A DNA stretch of 64,000 bases from Setoptus koraiensis (GCA_048013815.1 CM106586.1:23312001-23376000); one strand, 5' to 3'; counted from the first letter of the stretch, positions 12,927 to 39,095 are shown. The notes: generated from the letters alone by a model not told the origin. A program made the numbers and translations.

Positions 12927-12935
12927 TTCTCTCGA

Positions 12936-15925: not shown

Positions 15926-17299
15926 TTATCTTCTCGGGGCGTTTGGAGGGGATTTGAAATACAAGACGAGGAAATAGCACAGTATCGCAAACAACACTAA
16001 CAAAATAATGGCGAGAGTAATAATCACCCATTTGTATCGCCTCTTTCTCTGTGGGTATTGAGCGACCTCGCTACATGCGAGGTTCTCAAATTCAGTTTTG
16101 TCCATTTCCTGAAAACTTTTGCCGCTGTGATAGCATGAAGCCTTGATGTTTCTGAAACTTTCTTGGTCCTTGAGAGCTTCGCAAACGTGTGAGTAGTAGC
16201 AATCAACTTGATTGGAACCATCCTCATCACTTTCATGAACGATTGTTATACCTTCACTAACCATCTGGCCCAAATCGCCCGAATGACTTTTCTCGTAACT
16301 GTTGATATCTATGGAAATCTTTAGACTTCCGTTGTTCTTCAAGTAGGAGTAAAAGTCTTCATGGAGTGCACGTTTTATGCTGCCGGTTATGTCGAGATCC
16401 TTGAACGCAATACTAATTTCTGCCGAGGTAAAATTCCCATGCTCGTAGAATTTCTGTTCAAGTGCAAGTGATCTTGGTTTTAAATCCAAGGCGGCAAATT
16501 GATTTTGATTCGATGTTCTCAGCGTGATTGTTTTAATTTTACCAAACTCCGGAACGACGATTATGGAAGAATAAGTCAAAGTTAAGTTTTCAAAACTATA
16601 GATCTGATTCATCAACTTACGGTTGAGAGACATTATGTTGAGATTTTTTTTGGCTATTTTTTTCGCATCTTCCGGCAAATGAGCACTGAAAAAAGTGAAA
16701 TCTCCAGATATATAATGTGAGAAATTAACTATCGTAATATTGATAAATAATGACCCGAAAAATTCATTGTCAGTTATATCTTCATGGAAACTCACATTTT
16801 TGAAAGTAAGATTCTTTATTCTTACTCCTTCGTACTGTTTGTAGCCTTTGAAAGTGCTTCGACTGGGATTATCTGGACCCTCAATCGTTACCTCCTCGAA
16901 AGTTATATTCTTATTATCAAAATAAATTGAGTCGTTCAATATCTTATCCAATTTGAATTGCAGATTAACTTTCAAGCTTTGATTTGCATTCTGTTTCTCT
17001 TCAATGTACAGTGAACAGTTAGTAGTAGAATCGCTGTTACCGTAGGAAGTCTTACATTGAACATCCAATTGATTGTCATTAGTATCTAAGGAGCAGATAG
17101 TATCCGCACCGAATTTACATTGCTCAGCGGATCTGGGTTTGCTCTGATATGGAGATGACTGATTGCTTAAAATCCGCACTTGTGTCTCCGAAACTTGTTG
17201 TATTGCACAATAAATTGTACCAGCTAATAGCCCAACTATAAATACAAAACCAAAGAATAAATGACCATGGCTCGTGTGATTTTGGACACGAAACATCAT
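15926..17299 (-). CDS. Orphan type I membrane protein with Cys caps and degenerate LRR-like ectodomain, paralog A (457 aa)
   Basis: N-terminal hydrophobic segment, N-cap C-x7-C-x12-C-x12-C, C-cap C-x5-C-x15-C-x19-C, TM WVIITLAIILLVLFAILCYFLVLYF and a 9 aa tail. Intronless. Confidence 0.85.
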   Translation of the reverse strand: MMFRVQNHTSHGHLFFGFVFIVGLLAGTIYCAIQQVSETQVRILSNQSSPYQSKPRSAEQCKFGADTICSLDTNDNQLDVQCKTSYGNSDSTTNCSLYIEEKQNANQSLKVNLQFKLDKILNDSIYFDNKNITFEEVTIEGPDNPSRSTFKGYKQYEGVRIKNLTFKNVSFHEDITDNEFFGSLFINITIVNFSHYISGDFTFFSAHLPEDAKKIAKKNLNIMSLNRKLMNQIYSFENLTLTYSSIIVVPEFGKIKTITLRTSNQNQFAALDLKPRSLALEQKFYEHGNFTSAEISIAFKDLDITGSIKRALHEDFYSYLKNNGSLKISIDINSYEKSHSGDLGQMVSEGITIVHESDEDGSNQVDCYYSHVCEALKDQESFRNIKASCYHSGKSFQEMDKTEFENLACSEVAQYPQRKRRYKWVIITLAIILLVLFAILCYFLVLYFKSPPNAPRR

Positions 17300-17427
17300 G
17301 GAATAGATGTTGGTTGAACAATCGAATTTTGAGTGTCGTTAAGAAAACTGGTATAATTAATTTGAGTGAAAGAGATTATAATTGTTATGCACTCATTTAG
17401 AAATGAGTATGTTGTATGTAAAAGTCA

Positions 17428-17440
17428 GCTCGTCACGAGC
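17428..17440. promoter_or_regulatory. Candidate palindromic cis-element GCTCGT-N-ACGAGC upstream of paralog A; equivalents at 19601, 22539, 23040, 31615, 32123, 35634, 38920 and, degenerate, 50117
   Basis: 13-bp interrupted palindrome about 130-160 bp 5' of the conserved start codon in all paralogs. Function is inferred only from conservation. Confidence 0.45.
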
Positions 17441-17953
17441 CCGAAAATGTATTATGCAGAAGATTTGTTGGAAGAAGTAAGGAATGTGTGTCTCGTGATC
17501 CTAATTTCTTAGTCTTTGCATTATCACCTGCAACACTGATATTGGATCGAGAATCTATACAAAAACATTCGATGCAGTGAAAATCGTGTATCACTAAATC
17601 AATGCATTCGTATATAGTCATCCATAGCAACAACGGTTAATACCCAATGATGAGGTCGTTAGATTCTGTGATCGCGGGAGGTCGGAGCTTGAGGATGAAT
17701 TTTCTCGTACCTCCGACCAACCTATATATAGGTTCATAATTCCCAGCCTCCCCTTCCTGTAACCTCCAGGTAGATCTAGGTAGGGGGCAGTCAAAATCCA
17801 GGCAGCGAAAGAAAACTTATCAACTAATGTGTCAAATGGCTGCAGTTTGTTTGTCGTCGGAGGGAAAGAGTAATGACAGTGATTACATGAATTTTATTAT
17901 TTCACTTGCGCTTGAATACGGCACAAATAAAGAATTCAACATTTGCAACATTT

Positions 17954-19465
17954 TTAATTCCTAAATGTTTTTTGAGTTGATATCGACGATATTCTTGAAG
18001 TACGCGAGATGGAAACCGGAATTCGTTGCGACTTTGCTTCTTTAACCTTTGCTCCTTTGATCTGTGCTCCCTTGACGTTTGCTCCTTTGACCTTTGCGTC
18101 CTTCTTGATAACTTTAGCATAGAGAATGTAGCCAAGGATAGCGAACAGCAATAGCAGAGCTACGGCAAGGGCGAGAAACGACAATTGCGATCTACTTGGA
18201 TTGATCGTTGTTTTGGGAGGTCCGGGCTCCTCAGTAGTCGGTTCCCGAGAATCTGGCGTAGAACTTGGGCCACGCTCGGGTTGTCTAGTGACCTCCGTAC
18301 ACGCGAGAGCCTCAAATTCTTTTATGTCCGTCTCTCGAAAACTCTTGCCACTGTGATAACATGTAGCCCAGATCTTTCTGAAACCTTTTTGTATCTTGAG
18401 AGCTTCGCAAACGTGTGAGTATTCGCAATCAACTTGATTGGAATCATCCTCATCACTTTCATGGATAATTATTATACCTTTATCAGTCATCCGACCCAGT
18501 TCTTCCGGATTACTCTTCTCGTACTTGTTAATATCTAGCGAAATCTCCAAGACCCCCTTTTTGTGTTTAACATGTTTTCTAACAATCGCTGACTCTATAC
18601 TGCCTGTTATGACGAGGCCCTTGAATGTACAATGAACTTTTGAAGGAACATCTGTAGGTCCGATAATTTGGCTCAGATCAATCACAATAACGTTGCTGCT
18701 CAATTCCAAAGTAGCAGGTTTGCCTGGATTCAATGTCCTAAACGTTAGCGATTTTTGCGTTACATAAGTGTTTGGATAAACACGTAGAATCTCTTGCAGA
18801 ACCAAATTCTCAAAGTAATAGGTCTGGCTCTCCAAGTAATAGTTGCCGGATATCTTGGATAGAGATCTTGCGACATTCTGATTATTTTGTCCGGAGATAT
18901 AATATGAAACAGCATATATTTCAATCGCATCGCTCACACCGGATATATAATCATATACGATCACATTCCTTAGCGTAAGATTCTTTATTTTTATGTCGCT
19001 GTAATTTACGTAGCCGCTAAATGTGCTGCTACTCGGATTATCTGGACCCACGATCGTGACTTCATCGAAAGATATAGATCTACTATCAAAATCCAGTAGA
19101 CCAGCTGATTCTCTGTCTAACTTGATCAGTAGATTGACTTTAAAGTTTGGATTTTCTTTCTGTCCCTGCTCAATTATTGTGGGACAGGAAAGATTGATGT
19201 TTGCCTTCGATGTTTCACACTTAACATCTATTTGATTGCCGTCTGTATTATAAGAGCAGTTAAAACCCTTGTGGAGAATACATTGCACCGTCAGCCCTTT
19301 ATTGGGTTGAGGATCTCGTTGAGCTGATCGATTCCCTGCATGGGACACTCGTATGTTCAAATCTTTCTGAACCGTACCAAAAATTGTGCATGCTACTAGG
19401 CCAGCTATAAATAAAAAACCAAGGACTGAGTGACCGTAAGTCATGTGATTTTCGGCACGAAACAT
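17954..19465 (-). CDS. Orphan type I membrane protein, paralog B (503 aa); Pro/Thr stalk and Lys-Gly-Ala repeat tail
   Basis: Same Cys caps (NQVDCEYSHVCEALK…CYHSGKSF…C), TM LSFLALAVALLLLFAILGYILYA, and a conserved MFR.. start. Confidence 0.85.
   Translation of the reverse strand: MFRAENHMTYGHSVLGFLFIAGLVACTIFGTVQKDLNIRVSHAGNRSAQRDPQPNKGLTVQCILHKGFNCSYNTDGNQIDVKCETSKANINLSCPTIIEQGQKENPNFKVNLLIKLDRESAGLLDFDSRSISFDEVTIVGPDNPSSSTFSGYVNYSDIKIKNLTLRNVIVYDYISGVSDAIEIYAVSYYISGQNNQNVARSLSKISGNYYLESQTYYFENLVLQEILRVYPNTYVTQKSLTFRTLNPGKPATLELSSNVIVIDLSQIIGPTDVPSKVHCTFKGLVITGSIESAIVRKHVKHKKGVLEISLDINKYEKSNPEELGRMTDKGIIIIHESDEDDSNQVDCEYSHVCEALKIQKGFRKIWATCYHSGKSFRETDIKEFEALACTEVTRQPERGPSSTPDSREPTTEEPGPPKTTINPSRSQLSFLALAVALLLLFAILGYILYAKVIKKDAKVKGANVKGAQIKGAKVKEAKSQRIPVSISRTSRISSISTQKTFRN
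18030..18104 (-). repeat. 15-bp coding minisatellite, 5 units, encoding KDAKV-KGANV-KGAQI-KGAKV-KEAKS in the tail of paralog B
   Basis: Units such as acctttgctcctttg on the + strand. Confidence 0.85.
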
Positions 19466-20224
19466 CTTGGGATAATTGTTCGTTGAGCAGCAGAGAAGTG
19501 ATCATCGTTGATAATAATGGTATGATTTATTTGAGTCAGTGCGATCATGATTGTTATGCACTCATGTAGAAACTAGATATATTATGCAAAGGTCGCTGAT
19601 GCTCGTGACGAGCCAGAAAATATGTTGGGCAGGCGATCATTTAGAGAAAGTTGGAGGCTCATGTCTCGTGATGCTTGCTGCTTTGTCTTTGCGTTATCTT
19701 CTGGAACTATCAAACTTGATTAAGAGATTCAAGATGCGAAACGCAAACATTCGATCCAGATAGCATCGTGTATCACTGAAACAATGTACCGGTATTTTTT
19801 TATAATCGTTAGCCATCCGCCTCAACTGCGGTCAATAATGCTTTATGATGAGGTCGGAAGATCCTGTGATCGCGGGAGGTCTGAGCTTGGAGACAAATTT
19901 TCTCGTACCTCCGACCTACTCTATATAGGTTGAGACTCCTTGACTCTCCATTCCAGTAACCTCCACGTCGATCTAGGTTGGGGTAGTCGAAATCCTGGCA
20001 GGGGAGGAAAAGTATCAACTAATGTGGCAAATTAGCTGCAGTTTGTTTGTCGTCGAAGCGATAGGGTAATGACAGTGATTACATGAATGTTATTATTTTA
20101 CTTGCGCTTGAATACGACACAAATAAGTAAGTCATAGGCTGAAACATGTCCGTGCTGCAATGACCTGGCTCAGGAATCGGCGCGTATCTGACCTGTTCGT
20201 TGTGTAACCAATCTATCGGAGCTC

Positions 20225-20460
20225 ACATAGTGGTCAACTCGAAAAATTGATCTGCCTTGCGATCGACCATAGCAATGGCCTCGTCTAAAATCGATATTCT
20301 TCATCCTGCAGCACCGGCTCGAGCAAAAGAAATAAATCGACGTTGAACGACACCGAAATTGGCATTCAACGGGACCGACAAAGATTGCAACAGGCTTCTA
20401 TTATCTAGAGGTTTTCATCGAAGGTTGCAAGAAGCATTTCGCATCGTCCAAGCTAACCCG
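20225..20460 (-). pseudogene. Highly decayed ABCC NBD2 relic 1
   Basis: 20311-20360 translates as NFGVVQRRFISFARAG versus NFSVGQRQLICLARAI in the intact ABCC. The adjacent tcgtctaaaatc..tattct matches the ILILDE (Walker B) codons. Confidence 0.6.
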
Positions 20461-20996
20461 GTTAGAGGAATGAGATCACCGAGTGTCCCGATGAGAAAGT
20501 TCAGAGAAGGTGTGTGAATTATAAATCAAGAATAGAGAATTGGTAGCTCAATCAAGGAAAAAGGTTTTATTGCTGGCACAGTGAACTCCTTGCACGGAAG
20601 AAACCTTTGTGTTATGCATCTGAGTTTGCGGACATGTATAAATATGCTCTTTTGTGGGTACAATATTTCTGGATGGGGCGCCGTTTTTCTTGCAATTGTG
20701 TGCCGATTTCGAGCGGATCGCTCTCATATTTTATGGCCAGGGCATGGGATTGAGTCCTAGGCACTATACTATTCCTCCTTGTTTCGAATCGCATCGGCTT
20801 CCAAGTATATTCACATATGTAGTTGGATAAAACTCCTAAACTCCTCAAGGATACAAAAGTGACCATCGCAGTGTTCTTGGTGCACTGTCGAGTGCCGAAT
20901 GCAATGGATTTTATCAACATTCTTGGTTGGCCACCTGTGTACATATATGTAATCGAGGAGCGTAGGTTCCAAACGAGAACAACCAATTGTGAGTTA

Positions 20997-22380
20997 TCAG
21001 CATCTAATACTAGGTGTTTTTTGCCATGATCTCAACGGTCTGTTTAAAGGGCCAGAATCGATAACTGAAACACGTTGTTTCTTTGCGTCTTGCACCGCGC
21101 CCTTTTTGATAACTTTAGCATAGAGAATGTAGCCAACGATAGTGAACAGCAATATCAGAGCCACGGCAATTGCGAGAAGTGACAATAGTAATCTACTTAG
21201 CTTAATCGACGTCCCGGGTTGTTTCGTGACCTCCGTACACGTGAGAGCCTCAAATTCACTCTGGTTCATATCTCGAAAACTCTAGCCACTGTGATAACAT
21301 GACGCTCTGATGTTTCTGAAACTTTCTTGTTTCTTGAGAGCTTCGCAAACGTGTGAGTATTCGCAATCAACTCGATTGGAATCATCCTCATCACTTTCAT
21401 GAATAATTATTATACCTCTATCAGGCATCTGACCCAGTTCTTTCGGATGATTCTTCTCGTACTTGTTAATGTCGAGGGAAATTTCCAAAATTCTTTGCGG
21501 AAGTATTCCTGTTCACCAGTAATTGCCAACTGTAGACTGCCTGTTATGACGAGGCCCTTGAACGCAAGACGTATCGTTGCTTTACTGAAGCCTAAAGCTG
21601 GATTTGGAGCAATGTTAAGAGTGTCTTTTCTTAATTCCACGGTTGCAAGTTTGTCTGGGTTCACTGTGCTTAACGTGAGCTTTTTATTCCTGACACTCCA
21701 TGAAAAAACATGTGATTGTCTTTTGGTGCTATCTAAAATCAAATCTTCGAAATAATAGGTCTGATTTGTAAGATATGGATTGTTGGATATCGCGGATACA
21801 GTTCTCACATGCCTCTCGCGTAATAGGAGGTCTCCTGCATTTTGTCCGGAGATCTAATATGAGACATCATCGATTCGAATCGACTCAAGTCCCGTTCCAC
21901 GGTCGGATAAATAATCATGTATGATCACATTTCTTAGCGTAAGTTTCTTTATTATAATAAATTTGTAATTTGCGTAGCCCATAAATGTGCCATCAGTAGG
22001 ATTATCTGGACCCTCAATCGTGACTTCTTCGAAAAATATACCTTGATTTCCAAAATCGATTGGAACATCCAATGGTCGGTTCAATTTGATTTGTAGATTA
22101 CATTTATCCCGGTTGGACCATTTTTGTAGCTGCTCGATTTCTCTCGGACACGAACGATAGTAATAAGGATCTCCCTTCACTGTTTCACATTTTACATCTA
22201 TTTGATTGTCATTTGTATCATAAGAGCAAATAATATCTGAGCCAAACATACACTGGCTCTTAGTTCGCGTTGAGATGATTGATTTTCTGCAAGAGACACT
22301 TGCTGTGTGGTACCAAAAATTGTGCATGTTGATATACTGACTACGAAAATAAAGCAAAAGACTGAGTGACCATAAGCCAT
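20997..22380 (-). pseudogene. Orphan membrane-protein paralog C, pseudogene
   Basis: 7-bp slippage deletion at ~22255 relative to paralog D, in-frame TAG at 21854-21856, frameshift at ~21490, and AAG-to-TAG at 21282-21284. Cys caps and TM are still recognisable. Confidence 0.85.
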
Positions 22381-22443
22381 TGCGATTTTTGACACGAAAC
22401 TTCTTGGAATAATTGTTCGCTGAGGACCAGAAAATCGAGTATC

Positions 22444-23450
22444 GTTGATAATAATTCTATACTCCAATTGAGTGAGTGAGATCATGATCGGTGAGCACTT
22501 TTGTAGAGACTACTATCTTTTATGTAAAGGGCAGTGATGCTCGTGACGAGCGCGAAAATATGCTTTGCAGACGATCATTTGGAGGAAATGAGTCGCGTGT
22601 GTCGCATCATGCTACATGTAACATGTTAATTTCTTTTTCGTTGCATTACACACGCTGTATCACCTGACAAATCTCTATCAGTATATGTGAAACAATTATA
22701 TCTGACAGAGAAATTAACAAGGAGATCATCAACGAGACAAAAACATCCGATCCAAAGAGAATCGTGTATATCGTGTATATCACTGAATCAATGTATTCGT
22801 TTATAGTTATCAGCAGTAATAGCGATTGTTGCTCAATACTGGGATCGTCAGATCCCATGATCGCGGAAGGTCGGGGCTTGGAAATAAAATTTCCTCTTAC
22901 ATCCCACCGACGCCCTTTATTTTAGACTTTCAACCCTTCCCTCCCGTTGATAATAGTTCTATACTCCAATTGAGTGAGTGAGATTATGATCGTTGAGCAC
23001 TCATGTAGAGACTATATCTTTTATGTAAAGGCCAGTGATGCTCGTGACGAGCCCGAAAATATGTTTTGCAGACGATCATTTAGAGAAAGTGAGTCGCGTG
23101 TGTCGCATCATGCTACATGTAACATGTTAATTTCTTCTTCGTTGCATTACACACGCTGTATCACCTGACAAATCTCTATCAGTATACAGTGTATGTGAAA
23201 CAATTATATCTGACAGAGAAATTAACAAGGAGATCATCAACGAGACAAAAACATCCGATCCAAAAAGAATCGTGTTTATCGTGTATATCACTGAATCAAT
23301 GTATTCGTTTATAGTTATCCGCAGCAATAACGATTGATGCTCAATACTGGGATCGTCAGATCCCATGATCGCGGAAGGTCGGGGCTTGGAAATAAAATTT
23401 CCTCTTACATCCCACCGACGCCCCTTATTTTGGACTTTCGAGCCTTCCCT
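22444..23450. repeat. ~503 bp tandem duplication of the upstream region of paralog C
   Basis: gttgataata.ttctatactccaattgagtgagtgag recurs at 22444 and 22947, and both units continue in near identity. Confidence 0.9.
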
Positions 23451-23958
23451 CCCACTTACATCTCTGTCGGGAGAGAGGTCTAATCCTGGTAGCAAAAATA
23501 CATGTAGATGCATCAAATGAAATATCCGATGTTTTCTGCCCTGACACTAGAAAGTATCAATAAAGAGCCTCTTCGAATCAATCATTTGTTAAACAATTTT
23601 ATCTAGCTACTGTGACACCAAATAAAACGAATAGATCCGAGAGGCCGTGATCATTCGTGTGAGCGATCGTGTGTCATACGCTTCATAACAAAACACACGA
23701 TGGTATTATTTCTAGTTAGTTGGCTTCATGCCAGTTATTTTCGTCGTGATGTTATTTATAGAACATACATTCTAAAAGTTCTGACATCCTTGGCCGATCG
23801 TATCGGTTAGCAGTCGTTGTTTTCGATTGCGCCACATACATTAAAATTTTACAGTGTAAGATTTTTAGCGAGACGCCTCCAAGAGATTATTGATTGAGCA
23901 CAGTTTTATGTGAACATTTCCCATAGATAGATTGGAAAATCAAATACCTGGATCAAAA

Positions 23959-24243
23959 ATGCCACAAATGAAGCCAGTTGCTCTAGCAACTATCTTATGC
24001 ATTGTATTGTTTGATTTGGTCTTAGCTGGTGCCTATTACGAGATAAATGATGAAGTCTGTTCAAATATCAAATTGTGGAATGATATTGACAATAATAACA
24101 ATTCTGATCAATGTCTGGATTGTTGCAGAAAGAATGATTACCAGTCTGTGGTAACCCTGCCTTACCAGAGTCATGACGGTATTCTTGAACCTCCACCAAC
24201 ATCATGTGTGTGCAAAAGACTAAAAAGACTAATCAGATACTAA
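23959..24243 (+). CDS. Small secreted 6-Cys peptide (~94 aa precursor), pattern C-x17-C-x2-CC-x26-C-x-C
   Basis: ATG at 23959, signal peptide MPQMKPVALATILCIVLFDLVLAG, six Cys in the mature part, basic tail KRLKRLIRY, and AATAAA at ~24286. Confidence 0.7.
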   Translation: MPQMKPVALATILCIVLFDLVLAGAYYEINDEVCSNIKLWNDIDNNNNSDQCLDCCRKNDYQSVVTLPYQSHDGILEPPPTSCVCKRLKRLIRY

Positions 24244-26041: not shown

Positions 26042-28252
26042 TTACTTACTGCTCCTAGAGGCCCTCGGTGCTGCACTGAACATTGACTCTAGCTGGTCTG
26101 AGGTGAGCTGATTGCAAGTTTGCAACATTACATGCTGCTGGTTGTCGTTACTCATGCTGTTGCCCTCATTAGATATATCATTGTCAGTTGGTGTGCTCAT
26201 CAGATTAGAGGAGCACAATACCGACGAAAAGAGTTGACGTTTTTTCGGGCATATGTGCGACATGAATTCAACAGAGGCACCCAGAAACAAAGAGTTATAT
26301 GAGGTACCAGTTAAAGTGACAATAGCACGATTAAATGTCTGAATGTCACCATCAAATGTTATCAGACCTGTCCACAGGGATCCAGACCCCAATTTATTGC
26401 CATTCAAATCGGTCAGTTTGCTCATGGTTATATCAAATTTTTGTCCACTGGTTTCATTTAGCAGCGTTAATTGTTTCACTGTTGTAATGATTGGTTCGCT
26501 ACTCCTAACAGTGGCAGTTGCCTGTGAATCGGTCGGAATATTGGTGTACAGTTTCACTTGGTAATGTTGCAGACAGTAAGATTGGGTTGCTGAATTGCCA
26601 CTATTGACATAATATGCCTCCTTGGATTGCATATTGAGACTCTTGAATATTCTGAAATTATTCCTCAACAGTCCTGCCACTAGGCCATGTTGATCAGATT
26701 GATCAAATTCCGTGCTGTTTGGCTTGAAGGCAATTTTGTTTTGAATTTTTTCTTCATATTCATCATGTCCCAAATTTATGGGAAAATTCACCAGAGTACA
26801 GCGGCTTTCGTCCGATTGACAATTACGACAAGCACCCCTGCTGAATTCGTCGTAGTTCTTGCATTGATAGGCCACCATGTGACAGTGTTCGGTTGGTTCA
26901 TATGTCATCACATTGTAAGCAACCTGATGGGAGCAGGGTGAATCCCAATTGGCGCAACCTGAAATCATTATTTCATAAGATCGTTATTGTGCGAATAAAA
27001 GAATTAGAGGTAGGCAATTGCATCAGTTGCGACAGACTTAAACAGCAACAAGTCGGAAGAGTGCAGAATGATGCGTCAAATGGCCGATTAGTGACCAGTC
27101 AAGTCACATCACTCAACAGTTATAATAATTCAGAGATAATTCACAGTTAGTATAATTCGAATGAAAACAAATCTGTAATTACCTGGTTGTAGAGAGCCCC
27201 CGTTCAGGTAGACATCTCGTGAGCCTATTTGTTGTAGTGCGCCTAATAAGCCTGAATTGGAATGGATTATGTCCACATACTGGGCATCTTTTGCATCGAT
27301 GCGATCCTTGGGATAGACCAACTGAAAGCACGGACCAGCCGGATCTAGGCCAGTGATTCGCGCCAATCTAACTCCGGCCGGTAGATTTTGTTGTAGATAT
27401 TTGCCTGCAAATCCAACAACGTGAGCACCCAAACTGTGACCAATCAAATGAGTATGGTCAAATCTGGCCCCAATCGCCTGGTTCATTCTAATGAGGAATG
27501 ATCCCAAGTAGGAGCCTAGAGTTCGCGTTGTTCCCGCAACAATACCGTAGCCTTTGATGAGACCATCGCGTTCTTTAACAAATCCATTTGGCCAATTAAA
27601 TACAAACACATTGTAGGTGGTGCTTGGCGATTTGTCTAGGACGTCTATCATCGACTGAATCCAATCGTCGCTAGCGGCCACATCGAACGCTTAATTGTAG
27701 AAACGTAATGCGAATTACAGTATAAGTTAGGGATCAATTGACACTGCACGAGAGAATGGCGGCTATCCAAACGGTCGGGTGCTTGAACGAGGCGAAGAGA
27801 GATACCGAAAAATGTTACTCACAATTGTCAAATCCGTGAGCTATCACTTTGATTGGCAGGCTAGAATTTATGTTGGCCTCTTTGAAATCTTGATTGGTGT
27901 AGCCCAATTTGAATACGTGCCTCGGTGATTTGGCATTCTGTTGGCTATTCTTGTTTTGGCCAACTTGAAAATAATAAATTTCCGGTTGTATTTTGTCCAA
28001 TGACAACTGTTTACCTTCATTTCCCAAGCATTGTTTTGTTTCGTCGAACATCCAAGCGAGACTTTGCTCCTTTTTTGATTGACCCACTACAGCACCACCA
28101 GTCAACAGAATCAACACTGGTATTATGATTAGCGTCATTGATGATGCATTTTCGATGAAGGACATTAGTCTTTTGGGCAACATGTTGATGATGAATAGAC
28201 GACCAACTTTTCTTTCTGGTCGAAAGCTGTCGAGCTCTGATTGATTGAGCAA
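26042..28252 (-). CDS. Pancreatic-lipase-family triacylglycerol lipase/phospholipase A1; 3 exons: 28252 (or a downstream Met)-27824, 27689-27183, 26958-26042
   Basis: Motifs VIAHGF, HLIGHSLGAH (Ser), ITGLDPAGP (Asp), DAQYVDIIHS and CSHQVA (His). GT-AG introns restore the frame. Signal-like segment in exon 1. Confidence 0.9.
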
Positions 28253-29399: not shown

Positions 29400-29625
29400 A
29401 CTTGTTATGAGTGTCAACTTGGAGAATTGATTTGTTTCACGATCAACACTAGCAATGACCTCGTGTAAAATCTATATTCGGCAGCCTCAACAGTGGCTCG
29501 AGCCGAACAAATCAATTGACGCTGACCAACATTAAAATTGGACCGAGTGTCAGTGAGTTTCGGCGCGGTTGGACAGCATTCAGAGCGCGCCACAACAGAA
29601 AGCGGTAGTCATCGAATCGATTTAC
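29400..29625 (-). pseudogene. Decayed ABCC NBD2 relic 2
   Basis: 29489-29539 translates as NFNVGQRQLICSARATV; flanks align to ABCC 39350-39590 with indels. Confidence 0.8.
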
Positions 29626-30035
29626 AACGACTGGTCATCGAGGAATCCGATCAGAAAGTTCAATGAAGGTGAATGAATCAAGTCAAGAATAGAAAATTGG
29701 TAGCTCAATTAAGGAGAAGGGTTTCATTGCGAGCATGGTGAAACTGCAATTGCACGAAAGAAAGCTTTATGTTATGCATCTCAGTTTGCAAACATGTATC
29801 GATATGCTCTATAGTGGGTACAATATTTTTGGATGGATTTTCCTGATGTGGGCCAATCTCGAGCCGATCGCTTCCATATTTTATAGCCAGGGCATAGGAT
29901 TGAGTCCTAGACACTATTCCATCCCTCTTCGTTTCGCCAAATGCAATGGATTCTATCAACATTCTTCATTGGATACCTGTGTACATATATGCAATCAAGG
30001 AGTGTAATTTCCAAGCGAGAACTACCATTTGTGAG

Positions 30036-31457
30036 TTATAAACGTTGAATTCTAGGTGTTTTTTGCGATGATCTCAATGGTACCATTGAAGGACCAGAAT
30101 TGACAACTGGATCACGTTTTTGCTTTGCGTCTTGTGCCGCGTCCTTCTTAACAACTTTAGCATAGAGAATGTAACCAGCGATAGCGAACAGCAATAGTAG
30201 AGCTACGGCGATGGCGGCAAATGACAGTGGAGATCCACTCGGGTTGATCGTCGTCCCCGTCGCAGGATGTTCGGGCTTAGCACCTTGGTCATGCTCGGGT
30301 TGTCTAGTGACCTCCTTACACGTGAGATTCTCCAATTCACTCTCACTGGTCTCTTGAAAACTCTTGCCACTGTGATAACATGAAGCCCTGATCTTTCTGA
30401 AACTTTCTTGTTTCTTGAGAGCTGCGCAAACGTGTGAGTATTCGCAATCAACTTGATCAGAACCATCATCATCACTATCATGAAAGATTGTCAGACCCTT
30501 ACTAACCATTTGACCCAGTTCTTCCGGATGACTTTTCTCGTACTTGTTGATATCTAGAGAAATTTCCAAAATTCCCTTGTTGTCCAAGTATCCCTTTCCC
30601 TTAATTGCCGAGTATATACTGCCTGTTATAACGAGGCCCTTGAACGCAATACGTATTGTTGGTGGATTACCGCCTCCACCAGCAATTGGATGAATGTAAA
30701 GAGTATTATTTCTTAATTCCAAGGTGGCAAGTTTGTCTGAATTCAATGTTGTAAACGTTAACGTCTTATTCTTGCCATGCTCTGGATAAACATATATATA
30801 TCCTTGGGATTTATCTAAAACCAAATCTTCGAAATAATAGGTCTGACTCACCAAATTTACGTTATCGGATATAATTGATAAAGTTCCTGCGACATTCTGG
30901 TTATTTTGATTCTGTCCGGAGACATAATGTGAGACATAAGTTATTTTCATTGTCGAAAATGAGTCTATTTCTTTGGATAAATCTTGATAGATGATTACAT
31001 TTCTTAGCGTAAGCTTCTTTATTTTGATTCCTTTGTACTTTTCGTAGCCTCTGAATGTGCTGTTACTGGGATTATTTGGACCTTCAATTGTGACTTCTTC
31101 GAAAGATATATTTTTATCATCAAAATCGATTGGACCATTCAATATTTTATCCAGTTTGAATTGTAGATAAACTTTAAATTCTAAATTAGCACTCTGTTTC
31201 TGCTCAATTATGTTCGCGCACAGTAAATTTGTATAAGAATCTCCTTTGAATATTGAACATTTTACATCTATTTGATTGTCATTTGTATCATACTCGCAAA
31301 TAATATTTGAGCCAAACATACACTGCACACTGGCTCTTAGTTCGCGTTGAGATGATTGATTTTCTGCAAGATACACTTGCTGTGTGGTACCAAAAATTGT
31401 GCATGTTGATATACTGACTACGAAAATAAAGCAAAAGACTGAGTGACCATAAGCCAT
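30036..31457 (-). CDS. Orphan type I membrane protein, paralog D; probable start MAYGHS at 31457
   Basis: Open frame with both Cys caps, stalk and TM. The ancestral ATG of MFRV is AAG here and out of frame by one base. Confidence 0.8.
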   Translation of the reverse strand: MAYGHSVFCFIFVVSISTCTIFGTTQQVYLAENQSSQRELRASVQCMFGSNIICEYDTNDNQIDVKCSIFKGDSYTNLLCANIIEQKQSANLEFKVYLQFKLDKILNGPIDFDDKNISFEEVTIEGPNNPSNSTFRGYEKYKGIKIKKLTLRNVIIYQDLSKEIDSFSTMKITYVSHYVSGQNQNNQNVAGTLSIISDNVNLVSQTYYFEDLVLDKSQGYIYVYPEHGKNKTLTFTTLNSDKLATLELRNNTLYIHPIAGGGGNPPTIRIAFKGLVITGSIYSAIKGKGYLDNKGILEISLDINKYEKSHPEELGQMVSKGLTIFHDSDDDGSDQVDCEYSHVCAALKKQESFRKIRASCYHSGKSFQETSESELENLTCKEVTRQPEHDQGAKPEHPATGTTINPSGSPLSFAAIAVALLLLFAIAGYILYAKVVKKDAAQDAKQKRDPVVNSGPSMVPLRSSQKTPRIQRL

Positions 31458-32734
31458 TGCGATTTTTGACACGAAACTTCTTGGAATAATTGTTCGCTGA
31501 GGACCAGAAAATCGAGTATCGTTGATAATAATTCTATACTTCAATTGAGTGAGTGAGATTATGATCGTTGAGCACTCATGTAGAGACTATATCTTTTATG
31601 TAAATGGCAGTGATGCTCGTGACGAGCCCGAAAATATGTTTTGCAGACGATAATTTAGAGAAAGTGAGTCGCGTGTGTCGCATCATGCTACATGTAACAT
31701 GTTAATTTCTTTTTCGTTGCATTACACACGCTGTATCACCTGACAAATCTCTATCAGTATACAGTGTATGTGAAACAATCATATCTGACAGAGAAATTAA
31801 CAAGGAGATCATCAACGAGACAAAAACATCCGATCCAAAAAGAATCGTGTTTATCGTGTATATCACTGAATCAATGTATTCGTTTATAGTTATCAGCAGT
31901 AATAGCGATTGTTGCTCAATACTGGGATCGTCAGATCCCATGATCGCGGAAGGTCGGGGCTTGGAAATAAAATTTCCTCTTACATCCCACCGACGCCCTT
32001 TATTTTAGACTTTCAACCCTTCCCTCCCGTTGATAATAGTTCTATACTTCAATTGAGTGAGTGAGATTATGATCGTTGGGCACTCATGTAGAGACTATAT
32101 CTTTTATGTAAAGGGCAGTGATGCTCGTGACGAGCGCGAAAATATGTTTTGCAGACGATCATTTCGAGAAAGTTAGAGGCTCATGTCTCGTGATGCTTGC
32201 TGCTTTGTGTTTGCGTTATCTTCTGGAACTATCAAACTTGATTGAGAGATTCAAGAATCTAGACGAAAACATTTGATCCAGATATCGTCGTGTATCACTG
32301 AATCAATGTATTTGTTTATAATCATTAGCCTTCTGCCTCAATCTCAATCGATAATATTCAATGATGCGATCGTTAGATTCTGTGATCGCGGGAGATCGGA
32401 GCTTAGGGATGAATTTCCTCGTACCTCCATCCTACTCTAGATAGGTCCAGGCATCTTAACCGTCCGTTCAAGTAACCGCTAAGTGGTTCTAGGTGGGGGA
32501 GAGGTCGCAATCCCGACAGCAAGAGAAAACGCACCAACTGATGTGTTAAATGGCAGCAGTTTGTTTGTTGTTGGAGCGAAAGAGTTATGGCACTGATTAC
32601 ATGTGTGTCATTATTTTGTCTGTGCTTAAACGCTTCACAAATAAACATTTCCTAGATCGGGATATACGCTGCATCGACGTATTTGGGGAATGATATCTGG
32701 CCTGTTCTTTGTCTAGCCAAACTATCGGAACCGA

Positions 32735-33055
32735 CTGATGGTGGTCAACTTGAAGAATTCATCGGTCTCGCGATCAACATTGGCACTGGCTTTGTCGTAA
32801 ATCTATATTCTATAGCTTTCAACAGTGGCTCGAGCCAAACAAATCAATTGACGTTGCTAACCAGCGCTAAAATTGGCTTCAGTTTCAATCATTACTAATA
32901 ATAGTACTTCTCAGTTTCACAGCATTCCGAGCGTGCTATAACGAACTGTCGCTGTAATCATCAAATTGATCTAGTTTTCTCCGTCGCTCCCAGTGAATAA
33001 ATTTAATAAATTTAATATTGGCTCCTCTGGAATATCACTGAAGTTTCTTCGTAAC
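32735..33055 (-). pseudogene. Decayed ABCC NBD2 relic 3
   Basis: 32821-32874 translates as NFSAG*QRQLICLARATV. Around 33015-33055 it matches the LRKKISIIPQEPIL codons. Confidence 0.85.
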
Positions 33056-33965
33056 TCAGTGGAGCCTACGAATCCAGACGTAGGCCTACCTAGAACGACC
33101 AACTTCACATTCAGAGAGGACAGGGTGCCATTGGATTACTGCATCCTTCCATGGCCAATAGCAGCGATGGCGGTCAATATTCACTGACGATATTCTAGGG
33201 TGTGACGATCGGTGGATGTCGGGCGATCCTCGGCCCCGAGATAATTGAGAAGTAAATACCAACAATCTCTAGCGTCCCGTTATGCAGGTCCTAGGTTGAT
33301 AATAAAGAATACATGTATCGGCATATTTGAATGTTATTTGCTCAAGATACTTTTTTTGTTCATTTCAAAGGTCCCAACCATGTAGAGTGGCAGGCAACAG
33401 GTCTGTGCCATGCAGCAGAATCGGGAGTTCAATAGTTGAATATATAACTTCGTTGTATATATCGATGGAACAGTGATGAGGGGTCACTCAACGGAACGGT
33501 TTTCATCAGACTACTGCTTGCTCAATCGGAGACAATTTCTTCGCCTATATACATATATGCCACAATGTAACAGGGAATCAACTTGATTATCATGATCACA
33601 CCCATCAGTTTCTTGCACAAAGGAGGGATGCACATCTGCTCTTGAAAATATATACACATGTATCATGTTTGAGTGTAAGAAGCATCGTTTTCTCCTACTG
33701 TCTGACGGTCTTGGTATCAACAAAACTCATTCGCAGAATTGCGTCGCCTTTTATAACCAATTGTTCCAAATTTTGTAATGAGGGCTTCTCGGTTGAACCT
33801 TTATACTAATAATATCATGTAGGTCGATCGATAAACAGACTGAATAACTCAAAGATACACTGGTGACTATTTCCGGTACGCTGTCGGTCGCCGGACAAAG
33901 CAGATAGTATCAATATCTTTGGTTGGTTTATTAGGTGCATATATAAAATCAAGAAGCGAAAGTTT

Positions 33966-35486
33966 TCATTCAGCAATACTACTCGTGAGTGACAAACGTT
34001 TAAAAGAATTAGGTAAAGAAGGAGCTGAAGAATTAGGTGAAGAATGAGGTGAAGAACGAGGTGAAGAACGAGGTGAAGAACGAGGTTTCCTCCGAGACCG
34101 CGATGACCTACGGCGTGCATCGACAACTGTAGTGACAGGAAATGAGAGTCTAGGTCTTTCTTCTGGAACGATGACTTTAGGACGACTTTTGCAACAAAGT
34201 ATTAAGCACATTACAGCTATTATCACTGCAACAATAATCGAGGCGATAATCACAATCCATTTGTATTGACTCTTCGGGTATTGAGGTGCATCACTACATG
34301 CGAGATTATCAAATTCAGTTTTGTCCATATCTTGAAATTTTTTGCCACTGTGATAACATGAAGCTCTGATCTTTCTGAAACTTTCTTGTTTCTTGAGCGC
34401 TTCGCAAACGTGTGAGTATTCGCAATCAACTTGATCAGAACTAGCCTCATCACTATCATGAAAGATTGTTACACCCTTACTAACCATTTGACCCAGTTCT
34501 TCCGGATGACTTTTCTCGTACTTGTTAATATCTAGAGAAATCTCCAAAATTCCCTTGTTGTCCAAATATCCCTGTTTACCAGTAATTGCCGAGTACATTA
34601 TACTGCCTGTTATAATGAGGCCCTTGAACGCAAAACGTATTGTTGGTGGATTACCGCCTCCACCAGCAATTGGATGAATGTAAAGAGTATTATTTCTTAA
34701 TTCCAAGGTGGCAAGTTTGTCTGAATTCAATGTTGTAAACGTTAACGTCTTATTCTTGCCATGCTCTGGAGAAACATGTATATATCCTTTGAATTTATCT
34801 AAAACCAAATCTTCGAAGTGATAGGTCTGACTCACCCAATCTAAGTTGTCTGATATAATTGATAAAGTTCCTGCGACATTCGGGTTATTGTGATTCTGTC
34901 CGGAGACATAATGTGATACAGCATTTATTTTAATCGACTCGAATGATCCGCTTTCTTCATTGGATAAATCTCGAAAGATCACATTTCTTAGCGAGAGATT
35001 CTTTATTTTTATTTCTTTGTACTTTTCGTAGCCTCTAAATGTGCTGCTACTGGGATCATTTGGACCCTCAATCGTGACTTCTTCGAAAGATATAGCTTTG
35101 TCATCAAAACTAATTGGACCATTCAATATTTTATCCAGTTTGAATTGTAGATTAACTTTCAAGTTTTGATTTGCACTCTGTTTCTGTTCAATGTGCACCG
35201 GACAGTCAGCAATAGAATCGCTGTTGCCGTCTGATGTTCCGCATTTTATATTCAATCGATCATCATCTGCATCAATGGAACAGATAATCCCCGAACCGAA
35301 TTTACATTGCTCACTGGATCTTGGTTTGCGCTGATATGAAGATGATTGATTCACTGCAAGAGGTTCATGTGTATCCAAATCTTGCTGTATGGTACCAAAA
35401 ATTGTACAAGGTAATAGCACAGCTACAAATATGAAACCAAACAATGAGTGACCATAAGTGACCCTGTGATTGTGGACACGAAACAT
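33966..35486 (-). CDS. Orphan type I membrane protein, paralog E; probable start MFRVHN at 35486; Ser-Pro-Arg repeat tail
   Basis: Cys caps, TM WIVIIASIIVAVIIAVMCLILCC, and tail RRRSSRSRRKPRSSPRSSPRSSPHSSPNSS. Confidence 0.85.
   Translation of the reverse strand: MFRVHNHRVTYGHSLFGFIFVAVLLPCTIFGTIQQDLDTHEPLAVNQSSSYQRKPRSSEQCKFGSGIICSIDADDDRLNIKCGTSDGNSDSIADCPVHIEQKQSANQNLKVNLQFKLDKILNGPISFDDKAISFEEVTIEGPNDPSSSTFRGYEKYKEIKIKNLSLRNVIFRDLSNEESGSFESIKINAVSHYVSGQNHNNPNVAGTLSIISDNLDWVSQTYHFEDLVLDKFKGYIHVSPEHGKNKTLTFTTLNSDKLATLELRNNTLYIHPIAGGGGNPPTIRFAFKGLIITGSIMYSAITGKQGYLDNKGILEISLDINKYEKSHPEELGQMVSKGVTIFHDSDEASSDQVDCEYSHVCEALKKQESFRKIRASCYHSGKKFQDMDKTEFDNLACSDAPQYPKSQYKWIVIIASIIVAVIIAVMCLILCCKSRPKVIVPEERPRLSFPVTTVVDARRRSSRSRRKPRSSPRSSPRSSPHSSPNSSAPSLPNSFKRLSLTSSIAE
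34027..34086 (-). repeat. 12-bp coding tandem repeat (gaagaacgaggt-like, 5 units) encoding P[R/H/N]SS
   Basis: Directly visible at 34027-34086. Confidence 0.9.
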
Positions 35487-35809
35487 CTCGGTATATTTGC
35501 TCGCTGAACAACAGAGAAGTGAGTGTCGTTGAGAATACTGGTATGATTGATTCGAATCAGTGAGATCATGATCGTTATGCAATCAGGCAGAAATTGCATA
35601 CAGTATGTAGAATGCCAGGGGTATGTCGATGATGCTCGTGACGAGTACGAAAATATATGATACAGAAGATCAGCTGAAGAAAGAGAGATGTGTGTCTCGT
35701 GATGCTGATTGCTTAGTCACCTGGAACGATTATATTATCCGAGATTTTTCGAAATTTAGGAAGAATCTTCAGAGAGCCGAAAAGCACCTCCCTTCTGCTT
35801 GAATTGGCA

Positions 35810-37372
35810 CTACTTTAGTTCTGGCTGTATTTCCTTCTGTCTCTTGTGGTTTTTCTTGGCCAGTGACAGAAATCTCTCGTGCTGGCCCGTATTCATGGAC
35901 ATCTCATAGAAGATGCCTGTATTTGATTTGAGAAGGTCATATGGGGTATCAAATTGTTTGATTTGGCCAGAGTCCATCACAAGTACCCTGTCCGAGTCCA
36001 TAATTGTGTGCAATCTATGCGCGATAGTCAGGACAGTACAATCACGAAATTGACTTCGAATGGTTCTCTGAATGAATTGATCCGTTTCAGGATCAACATT
36101 AGCTGTGGCTTCGTCTAAAATCAATATTCTGTTGCTTCTAACAATGGCTCGAGCCAAACAAATCAATTGACGCTGACCAACACTAAAATTGGCCCCATTT
36201 TCGCTGATTTTGAATTGAAGGCCGCCTGGTGACCGCTTGGCAATTATACCCCTCAATTTCACAGCCGAACCATCTTAAGTGCCTCCTCGTCCACGATTTC
36301 GTCTTTAGTAAGCTTCTCTTGTTTTGCCCTGTTCGCTGTTACAAACATTTTCTGGGGCAATTGTCTCGACGCACGGGCCTCATCGAAGAAATCGTGGCTA
36401 TAATTGAGTGTAGTCGAGTACTCGCTCGAGGCCATAATTTCCTCTAGTGTTCCAAAGGCGTATGTGGGCGAAGCCGATCGGCTGTTTTGCATAACTAATA
36501 TCTTGGTGGCTTGATGCAAAAATTGCAACTGATGCGTAGCCAGCAAAACAGTTTTGTCTCTCAGAAATGATTGCATACAATGTTCGAATATGTGCTTGGC
36601 CACCGATGAATCCATCGCGCGAGTCGCGAACTGCATCAAACAATTTATTCATAACAAATTGAAAACATAAATAGATACCTATGGCAATGGCGCCCACTAG
36701 AGCTGGCAGCGGTCCAACATACATAGAGGCTAATATTGTAATGCAAATTGACGCCTGCAATTGGGCTACGCATAAATAGGACAAATAATAGAAGCTTGAA
36801 TCGAATTTGTTGACGTCGTTGGATAATAAATTTATTATCTGGCCGGATGTGGTCATATTAATTGACGATTGACTCAATACCAATGATTTTCTGTAAATAA
36901 TAAAGCTGCAAGCTAGTCGGCATCTCATACCCAAACGAGTTGAAGTGAATATATACGGATGCGAAGTGAATAAATATAATGCCATTAGCGTGCTCAATAG
37001 AGCACTTCTAAAGATAATTGTGTATCTATCATTATCGTTTAATTGTGTCAGCAGTTGGCGACTTAATTGATTTGAATGCAAATACATCGTTGTATGATTG
37101 TTGGCAACTGTAACAAGCGAATCGTTATTGTTATCATAATGAAAGGGTTGAATTGGAGTAGATGTTTGCTGCATTGAATGTCTAACCAGCAATTTTTGTA
37201 CATCTCTCAAAAGTAGCCTCATTGCAATAGCAATAGCAGGGCCAATGACACATTTGCTCAACATCTCCCATAGGGCACAACGAGAATAATGCCAGCCAAT
37301 CGCTTGCAATAGGGCACTTTTGAGGCTTTCACCCTGGGAGCCCCGCTTTTTCAGCTCAGATTTCCAAACAAT
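35810..37372 (-). pseudogene. Recent, internally deleted ABCC duplicate (TMD1 part + end of NBD1 + end of NBD2)
   Basis: Near-identical to ABCC ~44280-43528, then ~42275-41924, then ~39549-39096. Junctions at ~36625 and ~36265 are frameshifting, and there is no start codon. Confidence 0.95.
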
Positions 37373-38772
37373 CTGGAGTTCCCCCGAGGCGACCTACGGC
37401 GTGTATCGACAACTGAAGTGATAGGAAATGAGAGTCTAGGTCTTTCTTCTGGAACGATGTCGTTAGCACGACTTTTGCAACAAAGTATTAAGCACACTAC
37501 AGCTATTATCACTGCAACAATAATCGAGGCGATAATCACAATCCATTTGTATTGACTCTTCGGGTATTGAGGTGCATCACTACATGCGAGATTATCAAAT
37601 TCAGTTTTGTCCATATCTTGAAATTTTTTGCCACTGTGATAACATGAAGCTCTGATCTTTCTGAAACTTTCTTGTTTCTTGAGCGCTTCGCAAACGTGCG
37701 AGTATTCGCAATCAACTTGATCAGAACTAGCCTCATCACTATCATGAAAGATTGTCAGACCCTTACTAACCATTTGACCCAGTTCTTCCGGATGACTTTT
37801 CTCGTACTTGTTGATATCTAGAGAAATCTCCAAAATTCCCTTGTTGTCCAAATATCCCTGTTTACCAGTAATTGCCGAGTACATTATACTGCCTGTTATA
37901 ATGAGGCCCTTGAACGCAAAACGTATTGTTGGTGGATTACCGCCTCCACCAGGGATTGGATCAATGTGAAAAGTATTATTTCTTAATTCCAAGGTGGCAA
38001 GTTTGTCTGAATTCAATGTTGTAAACGTTAACGTCTTATTCTTGCCATGCTCTGGAGAAACATGTATATATCCTTTGGGAATATCTAAAATCAAATCTTC
38101 GAAATAATAGGTCTGACTCACCAAATTTGAGTTGCGGGATATAATTGATAAAGTTCCTGCGACATTCTGGTTATTGTGATGCTGTCCAGAGATATAATAT
38201 GAAACATCATTTATTTTAATCGACTCGAATGATCCGCTTTCTTCATTGGATAAATCTCGAAAGATCACATTTCTTAGCGAGAGATTCTTTATTTTTATTT
38301 CTTTGTACTTTTCGTAGCCTCTAAATGTGCTGCTACTGGGATCATTTGGACCCTCAATCGTGACTTCTTCGAAAGATATAGCTTTGTCATCAAAACTAAT
38401 TGGACCATTCAATATTTTATCCAGTTTGAATTGTAGATTAACTTTCAAGTTTTGATTTGCACTCTGTTTCTGTTCAATGTGCACCGGACAGTCAGCAATA
38501 GAATCGCTGTTGCCGTCTGATGTTCCGCATTTTATATTCAATCGATCATCATCTGCATCAATGGAACAGATAATCCCCGAACCGAATTTACATTGCTCAC
38601 TGGATCTTGGTTTGCGCTGATATGAAGATGATTGATTCACTGCAAGAGGTTCATGTGTATCCAAATCTTGCTGTATGGTACCAAAAATTGTACAAGGTAA
38701 TAGCACAGCTACAAATATGAAACCAAACAATGAGTGACCATAAGTGACCCTGTGATTGTGGACACGAAACAT
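37351..38772 (-). CDS. Orphan type I membrane protein, paralog F; tail truncated and fused to ABCC-derived sequence
   Basis: Nearly identical to E except for a central patch. The last codons GNLS* are ABCC KSELK codons read in another frame. Confidence 0.85.
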   Translation of the reverse strand: MFRVHNHRVTYGHSLFGFIFVAVLLPCTIFGTIQQDLDTHEPLAVNQSSSYQRKPRSSEQCKFGSGIICSIDADDDRLNIKCGTSDGNSDSIADCPVHIEQKQSANQNLKVNLQFKLDKILNGPISFDDKAISFEEVTIEGPNDPSSSTFRGYEKYKEIKIKNLSLRNVIFRDLSNEESGSFESIKINDVSYYISGQHHNNQNVAGTLSIISRNSNLVSQTYYFEDLILDIPKGYIHVSPEHGKNKTLTFTTLNSDKLATLELRNNTFHIDPIPGGGGNPPTIRFAFKGLIITGSIMYSAITGKQGYLDNKGILEISLDINKYEKSHPEELGQMVSKGLTIFHDSDEASSDQVDCEYSHVCEALKKQESFRKIRASCYHSGKKFQDMDKTEFDNLACSDAPQYPKSQYKWIVIIASIIVAVIIAVVCLILCCKSRANDIVPEERPRLSFPITSVVDTRRRSPRGNSRLFGNLS

Positions 38773-39095
38773 CTCGGTATATTTGCTCGCTGAACAACAG
38801 AGAAGTGAGTGTCGTTGAGAATACTGGTATGATTGATTCGAATCAGTGAGATCATGATCGTTATGCAATCAGGCAGAAATTGCATACAGTATGTAGAATG
38901 CCAGGGGTATGTCGATGATGCTCGTGACGAGTACGAAAATATATGATACAGAAGATCAGCTGAAGAAAGAGAGATGTGTGTCTCGTGATGCTGATTGCTT
39001 AGTCACCTGGAACGATTATATTACTCGAGATTTTTCGGGATCTAGGAAGTATACTCAGAGAGCCGAAAAGCACCTCCCTTCTGCTTGAATTGGCA

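Follow-up and report, generated by a model that had tools for sequence, protein, structure and literature searches.

The closest described counterparts of the gene family reported here are the extracellular leucine-rich repeat (LRR) proteins of type I, among them 5T4/TPBG, GPIb-alpha, LINGO-1, the Nogo receptor, Connectin, Capricious and Tartan. The family occupies a tandem array within a window of 64,000 nucleotides from the mite Setoptus koraiensis (GCA_048013815.1, CM106586.1:23312001-23376000; the window is this whole stretch of DNA, and positions below are counted from its first letter), and its members share the overall architecture of those proteins. Unlike them, however, the array proteins give no hidden Markov model (HMM) match to LRR, LRRNT or LRRCT, and their turns are irregular, being 15-33 residues long, with no conserved position for an Asn ladder. 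The classical LRRNT and LRRCT caps have a close cysteine pair (CxC or CxxC), whereas the cysteine spacing in the array family is C-x7-C-x12-C-x12-C on the N-terminal side and C-x5-C-x15-C-x19-C on the C-terminal side.

Comparison with other receptors is also instructive. With respect to the LRR domain of FSHR and TSHR, to which sequence identity is 8-10%, the array proteins have neither the hinge region nor the seven-helix membrane domain. With respect to Toll and the Toll-like receptors, they lack the cytoplasmic TIR domain that marks this class, have a much shorter ectodomain (about ten turns) and show no sequence similarity. The receptor L-domain proteins (EGFR, insulin-receptor L1/L2 and nematode families) are, like the array proteins, Cys-bracketed right-handed solenoids on a single-pass protein and account for many of the neighbours found by language-model features, but the array family has neither PF01030 nor an L-domain chain among its listed structural matches. 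An arthropod cluster of the ESM Atlas, named “Right handed beta helix region” (Beta_helix 53%, LRR_8 36%), has proteins of similar length from the same phylum; its members bear Pfam matches, whereas the array proteins bear none, and the two were compared by language-model features alone. Kinship to this cluster is a lead, not a result. The array family is, in our opinion, a new and fast-evolving one, with an architecture that is itself of a very common kind.

The explanation that we prefer is that the window holds a family of type-I LRR-like membrane glycoproteins shaped by tandem duplication and gene conversion. We regard this structural and evolutionary part as reasonably probable, and hold the functional part with less assurance. 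Each protein would have a cleavable signal peptide, an ectodomain of about 340 residues, one transmembrane helix and a short non-catalytic tail, and the ectodomain would form an irregular, right-handed solenoid of LRR-like type with about ten turns, each 15-33 residues long, between two four-cysteine modules. The array grows by tandem duplication of the 3' tail of a neighbouring ABCC transporter gene together with a receptor gene. Paralogs trade central ectodomain segments by gene conversion and swap alternative anchor modules (the type of B, C and D versus that of A, E and F), and copies are also lost, as in the case of C and G.

The array and its proteins

The array comprises the following features.

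39096-44489, minus strand: intact ABCC (MRP4-like) transporter gene, intronless, 1797 aa, heading the array
37351-38772, minus strand: paralog F, open, 473 aa from the ATG at 38772; adjoins the intact ABCC gene on its downstream side
35813-37378, minus strand: ABCC fragment between F and E, corresponding to ABCC residues 69-321, 739-856 and 1648-1797 (93-99% identity)
33966-35486, minus strand: paralog E, open, 506 aa from the ATG at 35486, with a longer Arg/Ser/Pro-rich tail
32725-33054, minus strand: decayed ABCC tail upstream of D, 46% identical to ABCC residues 1609-1720
30036-31457, minus strand: paralog D, open, 473 aa from the ATG at 31457, a mosaic
20997-22485, minus strand: pseudogene C, spanning the entire family length, its frame broken by at least four lesions
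20232-20363, minus strand: decayed ABCC tail upstream of B, 55% identical to ABCC residues 1671-1714
17954-19465, minus strand: paralog B, open, 503 aa, with a Pro/Ser/Thr-rich stalk, a transmembrane helix and a repetitive Lys-rich tail
15926-17299, minus strand: paralog A, open, 457 aa; stalk absent, tail very short (about 12 aa), 13 sequons for N-glycosylation
49722-49928, minus strand: relic G, signal peptide and linker only

On the coding strand, the order is thus ABCC (1797 aa), F, ABCC fragment, E, decayed ABCC tail, D, a lipase gene, C, decayed ABCC tail, B and A. The five intact paralogs are intronless minus-strand genes of 457-506 aa, and their identity to F is 93% for E, 65% for D, 53% for A and 50% for B. 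That five frames, each 457 codons or longer, should be open and have a ratio of non-synonymous to synonymous change (dN/dS) below 1 is far beyond chance.

A first-pass annotation, made from the sequence of this DNA, had recognised five open paralogs and a broken C, and all of these are confirmed at 15926-38772; the lesions of C include two frameshifts (near 22250-22267 and near 21490-21510) and two in-frame stops (21854-21856 and 21282-21284). The frames quoted there for D, E and F are open as well, but in their longer form they begin at upstream TTG codons and not at ATG. By family alignment, the start sites coincide with the first ATG, giving MFRV... in E and F and MAYGHS... in D. The same annotation had counted a relic, G, within 15926-38868; the relic exists, but its true site is 49722-49928. 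It is 47% identical to the family over 64 aa (E 3e-10), has no ATG where the family starts, and loses the frame further on. Its 5' flank (49770-50193) shares homology with flanking DNA of A, E and F.

In each intact copy, a basic n-region precedes a hydrophobic core about 17 residues long, and the two together resemble a signal peptide; a variable linker of 20-30 residues then leads to the N-terminal cysteine block (in B, the last spacing of this block is x10). About 250 residues, with short hydrophobic strands every 15-33 residues, separate this block from the C-terminal one. There are four invariant cysteines in each block, and all eight are invariant across the intact copies. Signal peptide and topology in A, B, D, E and F were called by hydropathy only, with scores of 2.0-2.4 for the N-terminal segment and 2.7-3.6 for the single C-terminal transmembrane segment, after which K/R residues follow. 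By this measure, the intact copies are laid out as type-I single-pass membrane proteins. The cysteine spacings, strand motifs, N-terminal hydrophobic segment and single transmembrane segment described in the first-pass annotation are all present in the sequences.

Two versions of the membrane anchor, unrelated to each other, are found in the family. In B, C and D, a Pro/Ser/Thr-rich stalk leads to the transmembrane helix (LSF...LLLLFAI), and the tail is rich in Lys; in A, E and F, the stalk is reduced to almost nothing (YKW), the transmembrane helix is a different one and the tail is of a basic Arg/Pro/Ser type, and in E and F only, cysteines stand at the cytoplasmic edge of the membrane. The tails, 12-70 aa long, contain no Pfam domain in searches made with the whole proteins, and no TIR, kinase, death or ITAM-like domain. 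N-x-S/T sequons, 13 in A, number 5-6 in every other intact copy; three lie outside the presumed ectodomain, namely in the signal region of A and in the cytoplasmic tails of E and F (one each).

Predicted fold and orphan status

Two AlphaFold2 models, of full-length F and of the ectodomain of B, were built from the window sequences alone. The F model has a mean predicted local distance difference test score (pLDDT) of 68 and a predicted TM-score (pTM) of 0.64; the signal peptide, linker and tail account for its low pLDDT values, while the ectodomain blocks are at approximately 70-90 (about 80). The model of the B ectodomain, based on an eight-row alignment that includes pieces of C, reaches a pLDDT of 81.5 and a pTM of 0.82. 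The B ectodomain is 50% identical to F, and the two models agree in their layout. A three-stranded cap opens the ectodomain at its N-terminal end and is followed by a helix and then by about ten turns that bear strands; in the C-terminal half, helices appear on the opposite face of the turns, and a helical cap closes the C-terminal end. Several turns bear two or three short strands.

In three VIA runs, all 50 listed PDB matches were LRR proteins; chains of EGFR or insulin-receptor L domains and pectate-lyase-type beta-helices were not among these 50 listed matches, and the alignments to the NgR2 and TLR4/VLR hybrid chains pass through both caps. Foldseek alone gave only weak, low-TM matches in PDB and in the AFDB clusters, and an Atlas shape search with the full-length F model was uninformative. 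When F and A, which are 53% identical to each other, were compared separately by language-model features, both had the same top cluster, an arthropod one of 439 aa labelled “beta-helix/LRR_8” (0.88 for F and 0.89 for A), which shares 193 of 256 features with F and with A. The next neighbours of both were arthropod “LRRCT domain” clusters.

An LRR-like capped solenoid is well supported as the predicted fold of the family. Homology of the family to the LRR superfamily is plausible but unproven. Tandem repeats of 20-30 residues with an LxxLxLxx(N/C)xL core, which define that superfamily by sequence, are not found in the array proteins; the curved right-handed solenoid with one parallel strand per turn, which defines it by structure, is present in the predicted models. 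With regard to the receptor L-domain family, there is no PF01030 match and no L-domain chain among the 50 listed structural matches of any run; its clusters come near by language-model features only (0.71-0.76). With regard to LRRNT and LRRCT (PF01462/PF01463), there are four invariant cysteines on each side of the solenoid, but their spacing differs and there is no HMM match at E<=10; the caps may be termed LRR-cap-like by position only. Thus, the capped LRR-type ectodomain proposed in the first-pass annotation, with AlphaFold and Foldseek as the suggested check, is supported as a predicted fold, the listed VIA matches being LRR proteins throughout, but the HMM searches at E<=10 gave no match that would identify the caps as LRRNT and LRRCT.

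Pfam searches with whole proteins (E<=1) and with ectodomains and isolated caps (E<=10) returned nothing above noise and, in particular, no LRR, LRRNT, LRRCT or PF01030. Sub-threshold Pfam matches to DXP_redisom_C, Collectrin and DUF families were dismissed as noise. A word-indexed search of F against 5.8 billion proteins gave no match, and an exhaustive search of a five-paralog profile against 1.84 billion representative proteins, made without a length filter so that fragments and single domains were covered, gave none at E<=0.001. The profile had no match at E<=10 among all PDB sequences, and a scan of JGI metagenomes produced 323 pattern matches, of which none was confirmed. An exact-sequence look-up of B returned no record, the window's own proteins being absent from the searched protein collection, and searches of the published literature found no description of the family. 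As a control of coverage, a neighbouring hydrolase gene (48101-49147) and the ABCC tail retrieved a 70%- and a 65%-identical protein, respectively, from the Logan assembly SRR33593474; thus, the collection includes one or more moderately close relatives.

As far as the searched data reach, the family is an orphan by sequence. Over the same range of data, it would also be a lineage-restricted one. That no named family could be recognised had been said at the outset, and this is borne out by the Pfam, PDB, 5.8- and 1.84-billion-protein and metagenome searches, none of which yielded a relative; a strong match to a known non-LRR family, which would have told against the LRR-type proposal, was likewise found in none of the Pfam, PDB and protein searches.

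The two contigs of SRR33593474 contain no family member: the one with the hydrolase gene (L001, 70% amino acid identity) stops short of the array position, and the one with the ABCC tail (L002, 65%) ends about 100 nt past the ABCC stop. It should be noted that on the syntenic contig of this related mite a 487-aa protein kinase gene directly follows the hydrolase gene (L001:4083-5546, minus strand). At 49150-51500 of the window, no trace of this kinase was detected by tblastn at E<=0.01; relic G is there instead.

Array growth and selective constraint

A recent event in the array is the duplication that produced E and F, in which 34105-36266 corresponds to 37391-39549, with 97.6% identity over 2.16 kb, and the unit takes in the 3' end of ABCC. 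The 3' piece of the ABCC fragment between F and E (35813-36265, ABCC tail, 99% identity) belongs to this unit, and each of the two 5' pieces (36265-37378) aligns on its own with an internal part of ABCC. Since three non-contiguous parts of ABCC are represented, the fragment is an internally deleted copy of the gene rather than just its tail. The upstream flanks of the paralogs have been copied as well. The presence of ABCC tail pieces before E, D and B, together with the E/F unit, indicates growth by repeated copying of an “ABCC tail + receptor gene” unit. Synonymous divergence (dS) is 0.05 for E/F and 0.46-1.1 for all other pairs; E is a recent duplicate of F.

Paralog D has a mosaic structure. 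It matches C at 99% identity over the first 150 nt and E/F at 82-97% identity in the centre, where dS is 0.04 (versus 0.4-1.1 in the flanks); its 3' part, which encodes the stalk, transmembrane helix and tail, is B/C-like. The segment encoding ...LEISLDINKYEKS...QVDCEYSHVCEAL... shows 82-98% nucleotide identity in every pair examined. The family thus undergoes birth and death, accompanied by gene conversion and by swapping of anchor modules. Birth-and-death evolution, as initially suggested for the array, is therefore apparent in the recent E/F duplicate, pseudogene C and relic G, but not in its pure form, because gene conversion also acts.

A 509-bp element occurs as a tandem pair upstream of C (22443-22945 and 22945-23453) and singly upstream of D (31520-32028). 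The copies are 94-97% identical and may represent promoter or 5'UTR DNA that travelled with the duplication, or a small mobile element.

Selection was assessed by pairwise Nei-Gojobori estimates of dN/dS among 4-5 paralogs, which have low power, and the site classes of the solenoid were set by the secondary structure of the model. Whole-gene dN/dS is 0.35-0.59 in the old pairs and 0.8 for E/F, a pair that at a dS of 0.05 is too young for the ratio to be informative. The main strands are the most constrained part (0.16-0.29). Within the strands, the hydrophobic core positions have values of 0.08-0.23 and the polar, presumably exposed positions 0.24-0.47; the remainder of the solenoid has 0.44-0.66 and the caps 0.26-0.58. 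All intact copies are under purifying selection, and in these pairwise counts of 4-5 paralogs no site class has a dN/dS above 1. Such constraint on the strands fits a real folded solenoid and so provides independent support for the model. An excess of non-synonymous change at exposed strand positions, by which diversifying immune-type receptors are recognised, was not seen (0.24-0.47 versus 0.44-0.66 outside the strands, at low power). The pattern is, in fact, opposite to that of diversifying immune-type LRR receptors.

Selective constraint is also the only sign, and an indirect one, that the proteins are made. Among the sequencing runs that hold parts of the locus, X1 and X3 have contigs that span a 1.9-kb intergenic stretch at gene-like depth; because intergenic DNA is covered like genes, both are genomic DNA. 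X7 and X8 hold short pieces only, some identical to the window (one of them intergenic) and others diverged. One of the diverged contigs was traced (X3 record 14) and proved to be paralog A of the window itself. In both DNA runs, contig depth is near zero over the central part of E (34661-34845), probably an assembler break where E is nearly identical to D and F.

Possible roles, rival explanations and neighbouring genes

The predicted structure suggests that the ectodomain serves as an LRR-type binding scaffold. The conserved strands of its sheet include ISFEEVTIEG, IKIKNLSLRNV and ILEISLDIN, and because conservation is highest in these strands, a binding surface or class of partner is probably common to the paralogs; the differences between them would reside in the loops, glycosylation, stalk and tail. 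The lack of a catalytic or adaptor domain argues for a role in adhesion or binding or as a co-receptor. Thus, the array proteins may act in binding or adhesion at the cell surface, or as subunits of co-receptors that depend on partners for signalling. In this function, which is entirely inferred, they would be more like 5T4/TPBG, GPIb-alpha, the Nogo receptor or the insect Connectin/Capricious class than like an autonomous immune receptor.

The first-pass annotation had instead proposed surface receptors or adhesins that evolve as expected of immune or host-recognition receptors. On such a reading, the ligand surface would be diversifying under positive selection, as it does in VLRs, plant LRR receptors and the expanded invertebrate TLRs. 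Tandem expansion, lineage restriction and the presence of a very recent duplicate beside a pseudogene and a relic are all in keeping with this, as are the LRR-like fold, the variable loops and glycosylation and a whole-gene dN/dS that is fairly high (0.35-0.8). It is, however, the strands, including their exposed positions, that are most conserved (0.16-0.29), with no site class above 1; gene conversion homogenises the central ectodomain and does not diversify it; and the tails, which fall into two unrelated short classes, carry no signalling domain of the TIR, kinase, death or ITAM-like type. For these reasons, we consider the immune interpretation unsupported and unlikely. Release of the product, to act on the host plant or on food after shedding of the ectodomain or secretion into the saliva or gut lumen, might be suspected from the RxxR motif that directly precedes the first cysteine in D, E and F and from the Pro/Ser/Thr stalk of B and D, which could be cleaved. 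A strong transmembrane helix followed by basic residues is nevertheless kept in every intact copy, and even pseudogene C still has its transmembrane helix and tail, so that we give such release very little credence.

Several observations weigh against a type-I LRR-like family as we describe it. Ectodomains and isolated caps match no LRR, LRRNT or LRRCT HMM even at E<=10, self-alignment of the profile (hhalign) reveals no internal repeat (E 0.63), hydrophobic patterns of the LxxLxL type are no commoner than in shuffled sequence, and no RNA run holding the locus was found among the sequencing runs searched for it. The lack of an LRR HMM or consensus signal would be expected if the ectodomain were a right-handed solenoid of another kind (a receptor L-domain, a generic beta-helix or a newly evolved fold) that resembles LRR proteins in shape only. 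The language-model neighbours of the B ectodomain, which are weaker and mixed, agree with this: receptor L-domain is the commonest label among them (46 of the 100 nearest named clusters). Moreover, the shape search matched a bacterial beta-helix cluster (TM 0.52) as well as it did a plant F-box LRR cluster (TM 0.51), several model turns have two or three short strands, and the spacing of the cap cysteines is unlike that of the classical LRRNT and LRRCT motifs as we know them. Against these stand the VIA results, in which the 50 listed PDB matches are all LRR proteins in each of three runs, and the labels LRR_8 or LRRCT on the two best full-length language-model clusters; a solenoid unrelated to LRR proteins is, on balance, not a likely explanation. 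The lack of an RNA run would also suit unexpressed or decaying duplicates with no present function, as would one dead copy, one relic and the dN/dS of 0.8 for E/F, but five frames of 457-506 codons have stayed open at dS values of up to about 1, core positions have a dN/dS of 0.08-0.23, and the eight cysteines are invariant, which makes decay of the whole family highly improbable.

A type-I LRR-like membrane family is of interest in this setting because eriophyoid genomes are described as extremely streamlined and dominated by contraction, with very few gene-family expansions (PMC7738191; bioRxiv 10.64898/2026.08.24.746826). Given so few expansions, a family that is still duplicating likely matters to the particular biology of the animal; the published eriophyoid genome papers make no mention of such a family. 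A bolder conjecture, which we think decidedly doubtful, is that an LRR-like surface family was born, or diverged beyond recognition, in one eriophyoid mite lineage and is expanding in a gene-poor, contraction-dominated genome at the mite-plant interface (stylet, salivary or gut epithelium), where it would sense or bind a plant-derived ligand, the conserved sheet holding a common class of ligand and the swappable stalk and tail modules setting the cellular output.

The locus also has a more general bearing. LRR-type surface proteins can drift beyond the reach of sequence profiles and yet keep a predictable fold, which implies that, in such genomes, counts of receptors made by sequence search fall short of the true repertoire. 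In addition, the locus illustrates, cleanly and on a small scale, how an array grows when the 3' end of a neighbour is repeatedly copied along with the gene, and how paralogs swap modules.

Apart from the array, the window contains the following genes and open reading frames (ORFs).

26042-28252, minus strand: gene of the pancreatic lipase family (Pfam Lipase, E 8e-35), interrupted by one intron or more, between C and D
23932-24243, plus strand: 103-aa ORF with a hydrophobic N-terminus and six cysteines, between C and the lipase gene
7880-8893, 10038-10907 and 12156-12926, minus strand: three tandem ORFs of 256-337 aa, trypsin-type serine protease-like by eye
749-2398 and 4764-6266, minus strand: tandem pair of related multi-exon genes with ORF pieces rich in hydrophobic segments, MFS-type transporter-like by eye

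The C-terminal 308-aa ORF of the lipase gene has no PLAT or other Pfam match past the end of the lipase domain. The serine protease-like ORFs share an N-terminal hydrophobic, anchor-like segment, and the third of them adjoins a run of N at approximately 12930-13440 (an assembly gap). The intron-poor genes of the window fit an eriophyoid mite genome. Mini-expansions of MFS transporters are among the few expansions reported for an eriophyoid genome (PMC7738191), and the tandem pair at 749-2398 and 4764-6266, if it does encode MFS proteins, would agree with them.

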